NCBI GenBank assembly: GCA_965112735.1
Contig: OZ218953.1
Coordinates: 1,054,001-1,118,000 of the forward strand
Reading direction: 5' to 3'
DNA from: Phaeosaccion multiseriatum
Taxonomy: Eukaryota > Protista > Ochrophyta, other classes
Length of the DNA stretch: 64,000 nt
Part shown: positions 26,219-36,427 of the stretch, one piece after another
How the letters are laid out: every line of letters begins with the position of its first letter
Numbering within the stretch: the stretch's first letter is position 1
Program-made: the position numbers and the translations under genes
Notes under the pieces: generated by a model
What the model was told of the DNA's origin: nothing
The model's input: only the letters and a program-made list of their open reading frames with translations
The model's database searches: none

Positions 26219-29200
26219 ATGATGGATTCGAGGGCGATCTTCCTCGGTGTGGGTCTTCTGGCCGTGGGCGTGCAGTCCATCACCCCGACGGACTCCGTCT
26301 GCGCGGACCAGGTCCTCCTGCAAGATGTGCAGAGGGGAAAGAGCGCCTTTTATTCGGACTGTGACGGAGTCATCCCCCCTACAACTGGGTGCTACGACCG
26401 TGGCCAGTGGGCCAATGAGGAGAACCCGAACTACGGTGCGTAGCGGTGGAGGGCAGGCAATTAAGGGTTACAGTTGCAACACTCTCCTCGAAAGCTGCTC
26501 TCACGCACATCCCTCCTCCCCCACGGTACAATCAACCCCAACCCGCTGCACCTCTACAGGGTGCCAAACGTGCATTGTGCAAGAGGAGTGGGCAGCCGAG
26601 TCGCTCTATGCAGTGGCGTGGGGGCCCGGCGGCTCACAGGAGGGCGACGGCATGCAGCCATGCCCGGCCGGCTTCGACCACGGGGCGTTCCACACAGCAA
26701 AGTACGGAGCTATCGAGGTTGTGACAGCGGCTGCGCTGCAGGGCACCGGGGAGTGCGACGAGTACCCTGCGGGGACCTTCTACAACGAGGCTGAGAACAG
26801 GTCCGTCTTATGTCATTCGTGGGAGGGGAAGAGGGAGGGAGAGGGAGAGGCAGGGCTTGCATTAGGATCTCCAGTGGACTCTTGTGGGAAACATACCGCC
26901 CACCCCCCGACTCACCACGCTCTGTTACCTTCCCTCCAGGTGCTACTTTAAATCCACGAGGTCCACCCTCTCTACCAGCTGGGACCAGGCAGTTATCCTT
27001 TGCGAGAGCATGGGCGGTGCTCTCGTGGCCATCAACAGCGAAGCGGAGTTCGACTGGTTCGTCTCCACCCTCCTCTGGCCGGGGTTCATGGGCGAGACCT
27101 TCACAGGACTCAACAAGGCCAACGGAGGCACATACGAGTATGTGCAATCCGACCTCATCACGCAGCCCTCGAGCTTCGACGCCGCTGACGTCAACTCCTG
27201 GTCGGTCGGCGCCGGAACTGGCCCCTGGTTCCCACCTTTCGACGAGAGCACGGAGTGTGAGTACCGCCCACCTTTAACTCAGACGGGCATGTGTGTGTGT
27301 GTGTGTGTGCTGCCTGCTTTGTCTCTATCTTTCACTTGACTAAGCAATCGACTCGACTGTACCCCCGCAATGATCGCTCTCAGACGCCGATCCCAACCCG
27401 GTACCCAGGACGTGTGTGGAGTACTACCCTATGTACCCCAAGCTCTTCAAGTGAGTCAGGGAGGGAGCGAACGGAGTGACTGGGGAGTGAGGGAGTGGAT
27501 GACTGACTGACTGGGTGGGGTGGGTGAGTGAGTGAGTGAATTGATGTGTGCACTTCCAGTCATGTCATCATTCGTCCACCTGTCCCTCGCAGAACGCCCG
27601 AACCCACTCTGACACATTAACCCCCCCCCCCTCCCCTTCCGTTGTTGTCTATCGTCTGCTGCCGCCCCGCCCCCAACCCGACCGCAAACCATCGGCGTCA
27701 CTCCTCCCTCTCCTCTCCAGCCCCTTCTCGTGCCGAGTCAGTAAGTAGTGGAAAGGAGGGGCGGGGTGTTCGGAACCGGAAAAGGGGGAAGCTCGCCTTT
27801 GCTCGAACATGGACCTTTCATTCAGGCTTTCAGAAACGCTCTCGCTCTCGCCGTGCAGTGCGCTGACACTGTTTCCCCCTCCCTTCCCTTCCCTCGTCCG
27901 TTCCGTCCCATCGACAAACCCTCCCTCCTCCTCCTCCTCCCCCTCCCCCTCCTAATACCGCAGACAAGCAGTACTCGTGTGAGCTTCCTTCCGCCTCCTG
28001 CAGGGCCTCTGGAAACCTCAATTGCGCGGCGGAAGGTCCTTCACCCACTCCTACCTCCCCCCCTGTAGCAGCACCAACCGCCACTCCTACCTCTCCCCCT
28101 GTGGCGGCACCCACCGCCACGCCTACCTCTCCCCCTGTAGCAGCACCCACCGCCACTCCTACCTCCTCCCCTGTAGCTGCACCCACCGCCACTCCTACCT
28201 CTCCCCCTGTAGCAGCACCCACCGCCACTCCTACCTCCCCCCCTGTAGCTGCACCAACCGCCACCCCTACCTCCCCTCCTGTAGCAGCACCCACCGCCAC
28301 TCCTACCTCCCCTCCTGTGGCGGCACCCACGGCCACTCCTACCTCTCCCCCTGTGGCGGCACCCACGGCCACTCCTACCTCTCCCCCTGTGGCGGCACCC
28401 ACCGCCACTCCTACCTCTCCCCCTGTGGCGGCACCCACCGCCACTCCTACCGGAGGGGCTGACGCGTGCTCTGCCCTGTGCTCTGAGTTCGAGCCGTGCT
28501 ACACTGAGCCTCTGTGCAGCGGCGGTGTGAGTCTCGGATGCGGTGCCCTCGGCTCGGCCAACTGCAGGTGAGAGGAGGGATGGAAAAGGAAGGAAGGAAG
28601 GAAGGAAGGAGGTTGATGCTCCTCTCCTCTTGTTGAATCAACCCTGTGCCCTCCCGTTGCCGTGAATCCCATCAGCGTGGACTTGTGTGCCTACACGGTA
28701 GTCAGCAGAGTAGACCGTTTCCTCACCCATACGCTTGTTTCCTCACCTGTGTGCTCACCCCAATCGTGTCATGAACCCCCCCCCCCCCCCCCCCCCCAGA
28801 TTCTGCGGCTTCGGATCCTTCTCTGGCGTCCCCTGCCCCGGCTCGGGCTCCACCTCCGCCCCCGCGGCCGCCCCCACTCCCGCTGCCACCTCTGCACCTG
28901 TGGCCGGCCCCACCCCCACCTCTGCCCCTGTGACAGCACCCACTCCTACTGGCGTGGTGGAGGAGTGCGCTCCCCTTTGCTCTGAGTCAGAGCCGTGCTA
29001 CACTGAGCCTAGGTGCACCATGGTGGGCGGTGTGAGCCTTGGATGCGGCGCCCTTGGCGAGGCCAACTGCAGGTGAGAGAAGGAGGAGGGAGATATGCCG
29101 TTGTTTGTTAGGTATGCTTCCCTCGTGTCAGTCACCCAATCCATCCTCTGCCATCCACTGCCCTTCCCTGCCTTTCCCTCCGGCTGATGTCCCCCCACCC

Positions 29201-30407
29201 ATCCATGCACGGCTTGTTTCTCACCCAATGCACTCCCTCCTTTCTGTGGTCGTGAAGGTTCTGCGGCTTCGGACCCTTTGCTGCCATCCCCTGTTCGGGC
29301 TCGGGCTCCACCTCCGCCCCTGCGGCCGCCCCCACTCCCGCTGCCACCTCCCCCCCTGTGGCCGGCCCCACCCCCACCTCCACCCCTGTGGCGGCACCCA
29401 CTGCCACACCCACCGGAGGGGCTGACGCGTGCTCTGCTCAGTGCTCTGAGTTCGAGCCGTGCTACACTGAGCCTCTGTGCGGCAGTGGTGTGAGTCTCGG
29501 ATGCGGTGCCCTTGGCTCGGCCAACTGCAGGTGAGTGGAGGGATGGAGAAGGCTATGGATAAAGTGAAAACGGCCTGCTCAAAGCAAGAAGCACCAAGGC
29601 CGGCCTGTCTCACATTCAAAGGTTTCAACTTTAGAAGCCCTGGAGGCGGATGGATGCAACGCCGTCTCAACTCTCTCTCTCTCCGTCCCTCTCCACCTCC
29701 TCTCCTCTCCCTCCCTTCCTTCCCGCCTACCCCCCACGTTCCCACCCCTCTACGCGCTATAACACCGTCCCTTACGTGTGGCTCACCTCGTCTTCTCTCT
29801 TCCTTATCTTCTCCTCCAGATTCTGCGGCTTCGGATCATTTGCTGCCATCCCCTGCTCGGCCTCGGCCTCTGCCTTCCCCCCTACGACCGCCCCCACTCC
29901 CGCTGCCACCTCTGCACCTGTGGCCGGCCCCACCCCCACCTCTGCCCCTGTGACAGCACCCACTCCTACTGGCGTGGTGGAGGAGTGCGCTCCCCTTTGC
30001 TCCGAGGCCCAGCCGTGCTACACTGAGCCTAGGTGCACCATGGTGGGCGGTGTGAGCCTTGGATGCGGCGCCTTTGGCGAGGCCAACTGCAGGTGAGAGG
30101 AGTGAAGGGGAAAGGAGGGCTTACGTAGGGTGATGTAATGTCGCAGGAAGTACCCCTTGGGGCTTTCATGCGGGCGGAGGGGAAAGCTGGTGATTGTGTG
30201 TTGGCTGTTGTATATTGACTGTCCGTCCCCTATATTATATATATTATAATACGATGGAATGAAGAAGGGGTATGTTTTTGTTTTCAAACGCGCTTTGCTA
30301 ACTTACTTCTGCTCCTCCCTCCCTCCCTCCCCCTCGTATTCGCCTCTTGCGTGCTCCCCCTCCCTAGGTTCTGCGGCTTTGGTCCCTACGCCGACATTGA
30401 GTGCTGA
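26219..30407 (+). CDS. Secreted protein, paralog A: signal peptide, Cys-rich N-domain, C-type lectin-like domain, Pro/Thr mucin linker, four 8-Cys modules. Exons 26219-26435, 26560-26800, 26940-27256, 27384-27450, 27721-27740, 27964-28567, 28800-29072, 29258-29530, 29820-30092, 30368-30407
   Basis: Signal MMDSRAIFLGVGLLAVGVQS. CTLD motifs RCY..SWDQAVILCESMGGALVAINSEAE..FTGL..CVEY..FNPFSCRVNKQYSCE. About 11 copies of SPPVAAPTATPT. All phases close to TGA at 30405-30407. Confidence 0.85.
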
Positions 30408-30924
30408 GACCGCTTGCTTCCTTTCCCGACCAGCAATACCGGCAAGTAAGCGGTACAAGCAGCGATTGATGCCCGCAGAAGTGCCAGGGCACGGCAGCGC
30501 CCCTCTCACTGTGGCATAGGAGAATATCCTATGATGCGGATGGATGAGTGAGTCATTGTGTGAGTGAGTGAGCGAGTGAGGAAATGAAAGGAGAGAAGCA
30601 ACAGGTGATATATGGCCCTTCCCTCTTTTTATGTACGTGAAAGAGGGGCGTGAGGATGGACGGAGATTGGCAGGATGTCTTGATATCAGCCTAGAGAAAA
30701 CGAGGAACGGAGACTTGCGTAGAGCAGCAAGCAATGTGAACGTGATTAAAAGGTGAAGATTGTGTGGGATAGGATGGGGTCTGGCCAGATGTCTTGGTAT
30801 CTGCCTGGTGGGGAGAATTTAAAAAATAGAATAGGAATCACCTTTTAGAAACTGAAAGTGTGGTGAGGAGAAGTAGAGCAGCAAGCAAAGGTGGAAGAAG
30901 ATTTTGTGTGTGTATGTGTGTGTT

Positions 30925-31091
30925 GGGGGGGTCTCCCTTAGTGAGACAAACAATGCTTATAAAGCCATAATCAGTAATCAGGCCCGGCTGGCGCCATAAT
31001 CAGTAATCAGGCCGGCTGGCGCCGGCAGTAATCAGTAATCAGGCCGGCTGCGCCGGCCGTAATCAGTAATCTGATAACCTCTTCCAGGGCC
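30925..31091. mobile_element. Putative non-autonomous element or iteron cassette: 4x TAATCAGTAATCWG separated by GCCGGC palindromes
   Basis: Copies at 30968, 30997, 31029 and 31060. GTCTC/GAGAC hairpin at 30931-30947. Class unknown; no transposase in the window. Confidence 0.45.
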
Positions 31092-31109
31092 GATTAGAAG
31101 GGTGTGTTT

Positions 31110-31545
31110 GTTACTGTAAGAGACACCTTACCTCCAAGACACCTCCGTTTTAGAGACACCCAAACTCCTTCCCTCCCACCCCAAACAACTGTTTTAACGA
31201 GGGTAACGCGATGCGCAGGTTTTTTCGAATGTTCAAACCCGCTCAGACCCACAAGTTGAATGCCGGTCTCGCGGGGTCCTGCACCCCCCATCAAGTTCAG
31301 TTCTATGGCCCTGCAACATGTGAAAGTTTAGGAAACTGAAACTCTTGTTCCTTACGTAAGAGAGGTCACTCACCTCCAAGACACCACCATATTAGAGACG
31401 CCCAAACGACCCCCCCCCCCTTCCACCCCAAACAACTGTTTTAGCGAGTTTGAACATGCGTATCGTGTTGTCCTGGTCGAGACAAGTCGAATGCCGGCAT
31501 CGTTGCCTCCTGCAACGTCTATGGCCCTGCAGCGTGTGGAGGCCT
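31110..31545. repeat. Diverged ~245-bp direct duplication between the lectin paralogs
   Basis: ACCTCCAAGACACC, TTAGAGAC, CCACCCCAAACAACTGTTTTA, ACAAGTyGAATGCCGG and CTATGGCCCTGCA each occur twice in the same order. Confidence 0.85.
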
Positions 31546-32256
31546 AACAAACTGCTATGTGGGTCTTTCATAAGGGTGTCTTGCAGCCCAGAGGGCGGTC
31601 CCCCCCTCCCCCCCCTCCCCCTAAAGTGCCTGTATCGCCGAGTTGAGCAATTTTTTTTTTTGTGGCTGCAATACGCCAATCGGTGAGTGGGTTCTCTTAA
31701 GGGCCAGGAAGTCTTACATAAGGGTTGGCTTTTATGCAGTCGTCGTCTGATTGCACCCATATGACATGGGAGGGGCTCTCTCACGTGAATGGTCCCGCCA
31801 GAAATTGCTCCTCGCCTTCGGATCCCCCGATTTCCCTTTGTTGACAGTGTGGTGGGGCCTGTTGTGAACACGGAATTGCCCATGCACAGAGTTAGAGCAC
31901 ACATCAAGTGATCAGGAGGGCCGAGAAGTTGAGACGCAGACTTCCAGGCACAAAAACGAGCAGAGAAGGGAGGTGAGTGAAGCGCAGGAGGGACGCAAGG
32001 GTGCGACGGGAGCAAGGCCCCCGACCGAAAAGGGAGAAAAAATGTGGAAGGGTTCAAGCGTTAAAAGGGTCACGATATATATATATATAACCAGCCCGCT
32101 TGCCCCGCAGCACAACACCGAATCTACAACATTTCTGTGGGACAGCGTTACCCCCCCCCCTCACCCTCCTCCGTCTCTTGAAAAACCTCACCATCCCGTT
32201 CCATCACAACACAGCTGATAACCAGTCTGAGGGTATCTCACGGAAACAAGACAGTG

Positions 32257-35200
32257 ATGATGGACAAGGTGATTCACCTCGGTGTGGGTCTCCTGACCGT
32301 GGCCGTGAGCGTGCAAGCCCAGTCGGACTCCGTCTGCGCGGACCAGGTCCTCCTGCAAGATGTACAGAGGGGAAAGAGCGCCTTTTATTCGGACTGTGAC
32401 GGAGTCATCCCACCGACGACCGGGTGCTACGACCGTGGCCAGTTTCAGTCGGAGGAGAACCCGAACTACGGTGCGTGAGGGCCCAAACCCTTTCACATCC
32501 CAGTTGCAGCACTGGAGGGGAAGGAATCAAGGAGGAAGGCTGCCCGATCTCGCCTCCACCCTCGTATTCTCTCACAAACCGTACATGTTCCGATATTCCG
32601 ACTGCTAACACAACACGCAGGGTGCCAAACGTGCATTGTGCAGGAGGAGTGGGCGGCCGAGTCGCTCTACGCAGTGGCGTGGGGGCCCGGTGGCTCACAG
32701 GAGGGCGACGGCATGCAGCCATGCCCGGCCGGCTTCGACCACGGGGCGTTCCACACAGCAAAGTACGGAGCCATCGAGGTTGTGACAGCAGCTTCGCTGC
32801 AGGGCACCGGGGAGTGCGACGAGTACCCTGCGGGGACCTTCTACAACGAGGCTGAGAACAGGTCCGTCTTATTCTTGTGGAAGAAAGTGCACTCTCTCAA
32901 ATGGAAGCGTTCCTTGCTCCACACTAGGCCCGCCTTCTCCTGACCCTCCCCTCGCAATCTCCTCCTCCTCCTCCTCCTCCTCCTCCTCCTCACCCACCCA
33001 CCTAACTCCCCTCCAGGTGCTACTTTAAATCCACGAGGACCACCCTCTCCACCAGCTGGGACCAGGCAGTCGGCATCTGTGACGCCATGGGGGGTGCCCT
33101 CGTGGCCATCAACAGCGAGTCCGAGTTCAACTGGTTTGTCTCCAACCTTCTGTGGGCAGGCTTCATGGGCGAAACGTTCACGGGACTCAACAAGGCCAAC
33201 GGAGGCACGTACTCTTATGTGCAATCCGACCTCATCACGCAGCCCTCGAGCTTCGACGCCGCTGACGTCAACTCTTGGTCGGTCGCCGGCGGAGGGGGCC
33301 CCTGGTTCCCACCTTTCGACGAGAGCACTGACTGTGAGTACACAGCCCACTCTCCTGCTTGGTCTCTATCAACGTCTTCGCCGATCGACTCGATTAAATC
33401 CTTACTGCCTCCTGCTGTTTCACTTGACTAAGCAACCGACTCGACTGTACCCCTGCAATGATCGCTCTCAGACGCCGATCCCAACCCGGTACCCAGGACA
33501 TGTGTGGAGTACTACCCTATGTACCCCAAGCTCTTCAAGTGAGTCAGGGAGGGAGCGAACGGAGTGACTGGGGAGTGAGGGAGTGGATGACTGACTGACT
33601 GAGTGGGTGGGGTGGGTGAGTGAGTGAGTGAGTGAGTGAATTGATGTGTGCACTTCCAGTCATGTCATCATTCGTCCACCTGTCCCTCGCAGAACGCCCC
33701 AACCCACTGTGACACATTCACCCCCCCCCTCCCCTTCCGTTGTTGTCTATCGTCTGCTGCCGCCCCGCCCCCAACCCGACCGCAAACCATCGGCGTCACT
33801 CCTCCCTCTCCTCTCCAGCCCCTTCTCGTGCCGAGTCAGTAAGTAGTGGAAAGGAGGGGCGGGGTGTTCGGAACTGGAAAAGGGGGGGGAAGGGGCTTGC
33901 CTTTGCTCGAACATGGAGTTTTCATGGTTTCGCTCTCGCCCGGTGTACACTCTACTGACGCATTTCTTGTGCCCTCTCCTCCCCCTCCCCCTCCCAACAC
34001 CGCAGACAAGCAGTACTCGTGCGAGCTCCCGTCCGCCTCCTGCAAGGCCTCTGGAAACCTCAATTGCTCCGGCGGCGGAGGCGGACCAGGGCCCACCCCT
34101 CCTACCTTCCCCCCTGTGGCGGCTCCTACCTCCCCCCCTGTCGCTGCGCCTACCTCTCCCCCTGTCGCTGCTCCTACCTCTCCCCCTGTGACGGCACCAA
34201 CCCCTAGCACTGGGGGGTCGGACGAGTGTGCTTCCCTTTGCTCTGCCTCTGAGCCGTGCTACACTGAACCTCTGTGCACCGGTGGCGGTGCGAGCCTCGG
34301 ATGCTCCGCTCTTGGCGAGGCCAACTGCAGGTGAGAGGAGGAGAAGGAGAAGGAGGGGGAAAGATGCCTGTCGTGTGCAATCTAAACCCTGTTCCCTCGC
34401 TTAGTCATGCATCCCCCTCCGCACGTGACTCACTCCTTACGTACCCCTTACGTACGCGGTGTGCAGCATAGGAGACTGTTACATCAAGCAGAGCACACGC
34501 TCCATTCGACTTGTCATGCCACAGGGCTTGTTTCTCCCCCACACGCTTGTTTCTCACCACAACCCCCACCCCCCCCCCCCCCAGATTCTGCGGCTTCGGT
34601 CCCTTCGCGGGTATCGCTTGCCCCGGCTCCGGCGGCTCCACTCCCACTCCCGCTGCCACCTCTCCCCCTGTGGCCGGCCCCACCCCCACCTCTCCCCCTG
34701 TGACGGCACCAACCCCTAGCACTGGGGGGTCGGACGAGTGTGCTTCCCTTTGCTCTGCGTCAGAGCCGTGCTACACTGAACCTCTGTGCACCGGTGGCGG
34801 TGCGAGCCTCGGCTGTGGCGCCCTTGGCGAGGCCAACTGCAGGTAAGAGAAGGAGGAGAAGAGAAGAAGGAGAAGGAGCGAGGCGCTTGCTCTATCGCTC
34901 TTCCTTGTTCCATGCAGCCATGATGCAGTGCCATCCGAAGAGATGACGCCACCCTCCCCTTCTAGGGGGTGTGGTTGTACCCGTAATCCTCACGCATGCT
35001 CCCTCCAATGGTATATTGTTTTCAAACTTGCATGAATGAGCAGGTTCTGTGGCTTTGGAGGCTTTTCCGGCATCGCCTGCCCCGGCTCGGGCTCCACCTC
35101 CCCCCCCGCGGCCGCCCCCACTCCCGCTGCCACCTCTGCACCTGTGGCCGGCCCCACCCCCACCCCCCCCCCTGTGACGGCACCCACTGCCACACCCACC

Positions 35201-35634
35201 CCTTCTGGTGGAGGAGCGGACGAGTGCGCTTCCCTTTGCTCTGCCTCTGAGCCATGCATCACCGAGCCCCGGTGTACAATGGCCGGTAGCGGTGTGAGCC
35301 TCGGATGCAACGCTCTCGGCGAGGCCAACTGCAGGTAAGAGGAGGAGGAGGAGGAGGAGGAGGAGGAGGTAGATGCAATGAGATGCAATGAGATGCAATG
35401 CGGTGCTGTGGTGCATGGGGATGGTGTCACAAAAGAAAAAGAAGTATTGGGTACAATATATCCGATGCATTGGGTACCTTCGCGAAGAGGATGCATCGGC
35501 CCAGGCGCGAGGAACCGGAGTACTAAAGCGCTTTTGTGTCTCACCCTCTACCCCCCCCCCCCCTCCCTCTCCCTCCCCTGTGTGAAAATCTCAGATTCTG
35601 CGGCTTTGGACCCTTTGCCGGCATCGATTGCTGA
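32257..35634 (+). CDS. Secreted protein, paralog B, same architecture with three 8-Cys modules. Exons 32257-32470, 32621-32861, 33017-33333, 33472-33538, 33819-33838, 34006-34330, 34585-34842, 35044-35334, 35595-35634
   Basis: Collinear with paralog A, with identical intron positions and phases including the 20-nt microexon. Ends FCGFGPFAGIDC-stop. Confidence 0.85.
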
Positions 35635-36427
35635 GACATTTGAGGCCTTCCCGGCCAGGCCAACGAGCGGAGGCAGACAGACAGACTTTGTCTGTCCCTT
35701 GTAACTGTCACATGTGACTTTCGAACTCTGACTTTTTGTTGCACCAGTTGGTCATTTGTTTAATACTTCAAAAAAGGAATGAAGAGGGGTATGGCGAAGA
35801 TGTCTTGATATCTGCCAAGGAAGAGAGGAAAGGTGATGTTCTTCTGACGTCACCTGTGTTTGTGTGTGGGTGAGGGTGTGAGTGCGGGTGTGGGTGCGGG
35901 TGCGTACCTCCCTTCCGGAGAGGGCACACGTCGCCGCACACCGCTATTTATTGTACATTAATTTTTTAATTAAAAAAAAAAAGAACTGGTCAACTTCTCT
36001 TTCGTATTGCAATTTGTTGATGTATATTGTTTTCTCGATTATGGGGTGGGGTGCGTTGCTTCTGCTTCGCTCACCAACTCACTCACTCACTCACTCACTC
36101 ACTCACTCACTCACTCACTCACTCACTCACTCACTTACTCGCTCACTTACTCACTTTCTAACTCATTCACTCTCACTCACGCACGCACGCACGCACGCAG
36201 TTCGTTACTCTAATGGTACATACATACACAAAGAAAAAAAAAAGAACAATACATATCCGTATAGATGGGCCTATGATGGTGTTGCCCGGGTTTTCAGTCG
36301 ACCCAATCGACGACGACGGTTGAAAACTGGCGCTACGACCCCACAGGCTATCAGAGGCCATTCCGCCCGCTGACAGAGGGGGGCAGTGGACCATGTCGCT
36401 CTGGTCCCTGAATATTGGGACTGGGGC

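Follow-up and report, generated by a model that had tools for sequence, protein, structure and literature searches.

Tandem genes for predicted secreted mosaic proteins in Phaeosaccion multiseriatum, with an intron inside each cysteine-rich module

The DNA analysed here, a 64,000-nucleotide stretch of the alga Phaeosaccion multiseriatum (GCA_965112735.1, contig OZ218953.1, positions 1,054,001 to 1,118,000; hereafter the window), carries two paralogous genes, A and B, which are arranged in tandem on the forward strand. They appear to form an intact pair encoding secreted, non-anchored mosaic glycoproteins. From the N-terminus, each predicted protein would consist of a signal peptide, a Cys-containing domain (N-domain), a C-type-lectin-like domain (CTLD), a Pro/Thr/Ser/Ala stalk and four (A) or three (B) disulphide-braced modules on short Pro/Thr linkers. 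Every module, called CRFCG module here, is cut internally by a phase-2 intron, and the internal exons carry the end of one module and the beginning of the next. We consider A and B to be secreted, multivalent binding proteins of the matrix or surface, in which the intron-in-domain layout would permit a change in bead number while frame and fold are kept (probability about 0.6).

Gene models and register of the module exons

Exon models were rebuilt by hand from the sequence and checked by script, with the exons kept separate. Searches were run with single exons or with intronless paralogs, which were sought in the host assembly of 67 Mb and 22 contigs (labelled G000; the window lies within its contig 4). 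The G + C content of the window is about 58% and introns are of the GT..AG type. The features of the two genes are as follows.

26219..30407, + strand: gene A, 774 codons and a stop in 10 exons (2325 nt); introns GT..AG, frame closes
26219-26435, 26560-26800, 26940-27256, 27384-27450, 27721-27740, + strand: gene A exons 1-5, rebuilt model
27964-28567, 28800-29072, 29258-29530, 29820-30092, 30368-30407, + strand: gene A exons 6-10, rebuilt model
28452..28567, + strand: head of A module 1 at the end of exon 6, L-type (profile positions 1-36)
28800..29072, + strand: A exon 7 of 273 nt; module 1 tail, linker and module 2 head, R-type (model, profile)
29258..29530, + strand: A exon 8 of 273 nt; module 2 tail, linker and module 3 head, L-type (model, DNA identity, profile)
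29820..30092, + strand: A exon 9 of 273 nt; module 3 tail, linker and module 4 head, R-type (model, DNA identity, profile)
30368..30407, + strand: A exon 10, tail of module 4 and stop (model, profile)
32257..35634, + strand: gene B, 590 codons and a stop in 9 exons (1773 nt); head like that of A, shorter stalk, three modules
32257-32470, 32621-32861, 33017-33333, 33472-33538, 33819-33838, + strand: gene B exons 1-5, rebuilt model
34006-34330, 34585-34842, 35044-35334, 35595-35634, + strand: gene B exons 6-9, module-bearing, rebuilt model

GT..AG borders were found in all 17 introns of A and B, and both reading frames close. By direct reading, the N-termini are hydrophobic and look like typical signal peptides. 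In both genes the stop codon follows directly on the last Cys codon and the C-termini have no hydrophobic tail, and thus neither a transmembrane (TM) segment nor a glycosylphosphatidylinositol (GPI) tail.

The host genome also contains intronless paralogs, which can be used as a splice control for the models of A and B. One of them, L071 (contig 5, 788377-791631), is an intronless open reading frame (ORF) with two consecutive units of N-domain and CTLD. It reads contiguously through ..NYGCQTC.., ..CYFK.. and ..LFPFEC....CELP.. where A and B have introns 1-5, and the modelled join of A exons 1 and 2 agrees with its ..NYGCQTC... Each splice modelled in the module region rebuilds a near-invariant CRFCG, a motif that is contiguous in 286 modules of other proteins (R in 94%, F in 78% and G in 85% of them). 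As far as can be judged from the sequence, A and B are real and probably functional genes.

The module introns are phase 2 in 7 of 7 cases, each falling within the Arg codon of C-R|F-C. Internal module exons measure 273, 273 and 273 nt in A and 258 and 291 nt in B, all of which are multiples of three. A profile (A2) built from 19 contiguous modules of intronless paralogs matched every internal module exon of A and B twice, with profile positions 48-58 at the start of the exon and positions 1-33/36 at its end. The E-values of the window heads against the latter positions were between 6e-8 and 2e-6. This double match identifies each exon as a rotated copy of the domain, out of register with it.

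Comparison of the exons of A at the DNA level yielded identities of 92% for exons 7 and 9 and of 90% for the tail of exon 6 and exon 8, while the remaining pairs reached 80–84%. The same tail-linker-head exon type with phase-2 borders was found at three further loci on contigs 13 and 3, and the other loci of the CR|FC type bear at least 3-4 module copies. In other subfamilies of the host genome the module is intronless or cut elsewhere.

An initial annotation, made from the letters of the window, had described two secreted paralogs of this architecture without a TM or GPI tail, and its 8-Cys pattern was recovered four times in A and three times in B. The same holds for the phase-2 cut at CR|FC, the uniform 273 nt of the internal exons of A, the composition of these exons (module tail, linker, next head), the Pro/Thr stalks and the variable module number (four versus three). 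The exons are symmetric (2-2) as had been proposed, such that losing or doubling one keeps the frame and rebuilds a whole module. The ABAB alternation of modules described for A is borne out by the identity values, which are higher within a type than between the other pairs.

The CRFCG module as a protein family

The module spans about 47 residues in A and B and 44-65 residues in paralogs, and has eight Cys in the pattern C-x3-C...C-[YF]-x-[DE]-P-x-C...G-C-x-A...C-R-F-C-G...C-P. The core common to the window and to contiguous modules is C..D..C..G..GC.A....CRFCG....CP. A search of the genome with exon 7 found paralogs with an uninterrupted module (L014, L015, L029, L030, L042, L043, L045, L050, L053 and L058), which make the limits of the domain clear. 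At least about 25 loci on many host contigs bear the module, and many of the paralogs are little more than strings of modules and linkers.

A HMMER scan of 1.84 billion representative proteins yielded 101 relatives at E ≤ 0.001 (21 at E ≤ 1e-10) with 286 modules. None of the relatives that were looked up (30 clusters) bears a functional name. The clusters derive from Logan, JGI, ENA, MMETSP, EukProt and a marine metatranscriptome catalogue, and Tara-type transcripts are among the sources. Organisms named for them comprise one brown alga (Choristocarpus tenellus), one foraminifer (Reticulomyxa filosa) and one euglenid (Peranema, transcriptome). Partner domains among the relatives are a TM segment with a protein kinase (three proteins), REJ with GPS, and thaumatin; this company indicates that the module is extracellular.

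Two subtypes of the module were found, namely the 8-Cys form of A and B and a 6-Cys form. The latter is the commoner of the two; it has an aromatic residue in place of Cys 3 and lacks one Cys upstream. Such a paired absence is expected if the two Cys pair with each other. There are also hints in the sequences that Cys 7 and Cys 8 may form a pair. In L045 and L047 (contigs 15 and 11) the last module ends with ..CRF, a few residues and a stop, and Cys 7 and Cys 8 are absent. Use of a CR|FC intron by these last modules was considered and rejected, the ORFs simply stopping after CRF. A sister module with ten Cys (..C-x2-C-x3-C...C-F-[IV]-D-[PE]-x-C...GLGCN...C-R-[GV]-C...C-G-x-C-P) is located upstream of the CRFCG modules in the intronless paralogs L042, L043, L045 and L029 (contigs 10, 1, 15 and 14).

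Searches for a known domain gave no assignment. Pfam returned no family at E ≤ 10 for two multi-module ORFs, and for 35 members and the exons only zinc-finger-type noise caused by a C-x2-C-G knuckle. Among the weak matches, zf-C2HC5 reached 32 bits summed over one protein (P0002) with no single stretch passing, and zf-WIZ and zf-C2HC5 had E-values of 0.004-0.009 on a few members. Among the named Cys-rich families, neither WSC, PSI, CFEM and EsV-1-7 nor knottins or CS-alpha-beta defensins gave a Pfam match at E ≤ 1, a value of 0.078 for PSI_Plexin-B on one member being noise, and Furin-like domains were not matched either. The EsV-1-7/IMM family was rejected as a candidate on account of its different motif, its conserved His and the blank Pfam result. 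A sequence search of the PDB with the module profile produced only chance glucokinase rows (E about 0.9), and a search of the ESM Atlas with one module gave no usable match. A word-based protein search with the module returned one match. Literature searches for the motif, and for Cys-rich or lectin proteins of brown algae, yielded nothing relevant.

An AlphaFold model of a paralog module based on 35 sequences (pLDDT 84) shows an N-terminal helix with the C-x3-C and a small three-stranded sheet; a model based on 19 sequences (pLDDT 62) was too poor for use. No fold match to the former was found with Foldseek against the PDB (0), in a wide VIA search (0 chains at Z ≥ 2) or in BFVD, which is weak evidence given a predicted model of 54 residues. 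The initial annotation could not assign the module to a named domain, which agrees with the Pfam, PDB sequence, ESM Atlas and fold searches.

Judged from these comparisons, the CRFCG module is a rare, unnamed and apparently extracellular family of several protist lineages, in which it also occurs in the outer part of receptor kinases. More tentatively, and with somewhat less than even confidence, it may be an undescribed ancient extracellular family of protists that serves both in kinase-ectodomain sensors and in matrix beads, and that was turned into a frame-safe cassette by an intron in this alga. The same guarded estimate covers the lineages involved, which would be Rhizaria and stramenopile algae, perhaps also euglenids, and a large number of marine eukaryotes that are not in culture.

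Head, stalks and history of the locus

The regions upstream of the modules of gene A, and the stalks of both genes, are located as follows.

26219..26800, + strand: signal peptide and Cys-containing N-domain (A exons 1-2); hydrophobic N-terminus, family unassigned
26940..28040, + strand: CTLD, A exon 3 to the start of exon 6 (26940-27256, 27384-27450, 27721-27740, 27964-~28040); Pfam Lectin_C on exon 3
28045..28451, + strand: A stalk, 36-nt unit x11.3, a 12-residue Pro/Thr/Ser/Ala repeat (TRF, 92% matches)
34099-34189, + strand: B stalk, 24-nt unit x3.8, a Pro/Thr/Ser/Ala repeat (TRF)

Exon 3 of A matches Pfam Lectin_C (PF00059) with 23.8 bits, which is above the cut-off of 22.6, and L071 matches it with 44.9 bits (E 2.2e-11). 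The contiguous CTLD of L071 aligns over its full length to a CTLD of PLA2R in the PDB and also to CD69, and a search of the ESM Atlas with the head returned only clusters of the Lectin_C type. The canonical Ca2+/carbohydrate site (EPN/QPD plus WND) was not found in the CTLD. At these places the window reads ..DPNPVPRTC.. and ..LF-N-PFSC.., and L071 reads ..AGTRSC.. and ..LFPFEC.., the latter aligned to LLPLHC of PLA2R. The C-type-lectin-like domain of the initial annotation is supported by the Pfam scores, but the word lectin is too strong for it. By sequence comparison, the head has a C-type-lectin-like fold and is not a demonstrated lectin.

The N-domain is about 130 residues long and has no relative in Pfam or the PDB. 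It accompanies a CTLD at four other loci of the host genome, and a word-based protein search with the unit of N-domain and CTLD found no relatives elsewhere. The idea that it might be a distant relative of the module was rejected (hhalign probability 0.5%). Between A and B, exon 2 has a dN of 0.005 and a dS of 0.12 (omega about 0.04), which indicates strong purifying selection, and omega of exon 3 is about 0.22.

The modules of A and B are set apart by shorter Pro/Thr/Ser/Ala versions of the stalk repeat. The stalks are probably O-glycosylated and extended, and in this resemble mucins and the cores of arabinogalactan proteins (AGPs). AGP-like backbones are reported from brown algae in a review (PMC8307928, citing Herve et al. 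2016).

Two further features concern the history of the locus.

27384..27740, + strand: exons 4 and 5 of A with the intron between them, 99% identity to B 33472-33838 (98.9% in intron 4)
28733..28747, + strand: A intron 6, motif GCTTGTTTC(C)TCACC; recurs in A intron 7 (29212-29222) and twice in B intron 6 (34526-34536, 34545-34555)

Outside the 99% tract, A and B have diverged, with identities of about 65% in introns 1-2 and 88% in exon 3 and with unalignable flanks. On these values, A and B are taken to be an old tandem duplication and the tract to be a recent gene conversion within the otherwise diverged paralogs. Two types of module head, with a short loop after ..EPLC or a longer one after ..EPRC, are common to A, B and the loci on contigs 13 and 3, indicating that the types are older than the split between A and B.

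The duplication of exons together with their introns, as originally suggested, is not supported. Similarity between the repeated units of A ends 7-22 nt beyond the exons, and the corresponding introns are unalignable. Gene conversion confined to exons, or old duplicates kept under selection, would fit these limits better than a recent duplication of exon and intron. Of the relics said to be shared by the flanking introns, one short motif stands out, although the module introns are otherwise unalignable: GCTTGTTTCYC occurs three times in the window versus 0.14 times expected, with one copy in A intron 7 and two in B intron 6. If a near-copy in A intron 6 is counted, it is present in three of the seven module introns. 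The motif could represent the remains of a shared intron or an element resembling a branch point.

Several repeats were observed in the non-coding parts of the locus. The spacer between A and B contains a 31-nt unit (TAATCAGTAATCAGGCCGGCTGGCGCC...) repeated 3.4 times at 30968-31071, and a unit of about 230-245 bp present as a tandem duplicate with about 80% identity (31127-31338 and 31369-31554). A motif, ..GATGTCTTG(A/G)TATC(A/T)GCC.., occurs three times (30658-30692, 30772-30806, about 35798-35825) at a distance of a few hundred bases past the stop codons of A and B, and could be a 3'-UTR or termination element. A (GT)n microsatellite lies in A intron 3 (27290-27310), and intron 4, which is conserved, has simple repeats rich in GAGT/GGGA at its 5' end (27459-27560 in A, 33547-33640 in B). 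Pfam gave no useful match for the 18 other long ORFs of the window.

Functional interpretation and comparison with known systems

In the reading proposed here, head and beads would be the binding parts and the stalks would act as spacers, with a role in adhesion or recognition. Owing to the phase-2 intron inside the module, the unit duplicated would be tail, linker and head. The gain, loss or skipping of an internal exon would then keep the frame and recreate a complete hybrid module.

Some points weigh against this interpretation. Transcripts and proteins of A and B are predictions from the genomic sequence, and the binding of a partner, glycan or wall is something that we infer. Since its CTLD has neither EPN/QPD nor WND, the head is unlikely to bind sugars by the classical route. 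The fold model was made from a paralog module and not from one of the window, and the module is to be regarded as unnamed with respect to Pfam, the PDB, the ESM Atlas and the literature.

One alternative is that A and B are diversifying lectins of immune or self/non-self recognition, in which skipping or shuffling of exons would vary the number and sequence of the modules and so yield a repertoire. The symmetric 2-2 exons are suited to this, as are the differing copy numbers (four in A, three in B, at least 3-4 at other loci) and the patchy conversion between A and B. The comparison of A exons 7 and 9 also points in this direction, with a dN/dS of about 0.75 and changes clustered after the tail. 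However, this count is tiny (14 non-synonymous versus 7 synonymous changes) and concerns chiefly the linker, while the head is strongly conserved (omega 0.04-0.22) and the locus holds two genes only. We regard this explanation as unlikely.

An alternative of similarly low probability holds that the modules are purely structural, as rigid beads or wall cross-linkers of the extensin or AGP kind with no specific ligand, and that the CTLD is a scaffold. AGP-like stalks and linkers with much Pro/Thr predominate in the sequence, the CTLD lacks sugar and Ca motifs, A and B lack an anchor and many paralogs are mere strings of modules and linkers. Against this, the occurrence of the module in receptor-kinase and REJ/GPS ectodomains argues for ligand binding, and distant lineages share a highly conserved core surface motif.

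A very improbable alternative is that the module binds zinc as a knuckle or ribbon instead of being a disulphide domain, as the weak but repeated matches of the C-x2-C-G knuckle to zf-C2HC5 and zf-WIZ might suggest, or that the genes are untranscribed relics. Against it stand the signal peptides, the mucin-like linkers and the ectodomain position outside a TM segment, the fact that the 8-Cys and 6-Cys subtypes differ by Cys gained or lost two at a time, and the lack of a conserved His in the window modules. Reading frames and splice sites are undamaged in both genes, which are also under purifying selection.

The preferred reading, that of secreted multivalent binding proteins, bears on a poorly known group, namely the matrix and surface-receptor proteins of algae of the brown lineage and of other protists. 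A compact domain without name, structure or ligand that is found in matrix proteins, receptor-kinase ectodomains and polycystin-like proteins is a target for structural and ligand work. The locus reveals no new kind of mechanism, but it is a clean example of how an intron inside a repeat permits a change in bead number with frame and fold intact.

The head of A and B resembles the non-sugar-binding CTLDs of PLA2R and CD69, and the alignment of the contiguous paralog to PLA2R covers the whole domain, its C-terminal ..C..(hydrophobic)..C.. end included. It differs from them in that DPN and F-N-P replace the EPN/QPD and WND site, a conserved N-domain precedes the CTLD and the host is a non-animal eukaryote.

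With 45-60 residues, 6-8 Cys and an extracellular location, the module is comparable to WSC, PSI, CFEM, knottins or CS-alpha-beta defensins, and EsV-1-7. In the predicted model, the helix with C-x3-C packed on a small sheet recalls the CS-alpha-beta layout, whereas the strand motif is C-x2-C and not C-x-C. The conserved His of EsV-1-7 is lacking.

Mucins and chimeric AGP- or extensin-like wall proteins share with A and B a secreted nature and tandem Pro/Thr/Ser/Ala stalks between folded domains, and the repeat length varies between the two paralogs. In contrast to AGPs, A and B have no GPI signal, their folded partners (CTLD and CRFCG module) are not described for AGPs, and their glycosylation is predicted.

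Arrays of EGF, Sushi or Ig domains, and repeat proteins with introns inside the repeat, likewise grow by duplication of symmetric exons, with frame and fold being kept. In A and B, the exons are of phase 2-2, the intron interrupts the domain after Cys 6 and before Cys 7 instead of marking its edge, and each exon contains portions of two domains.

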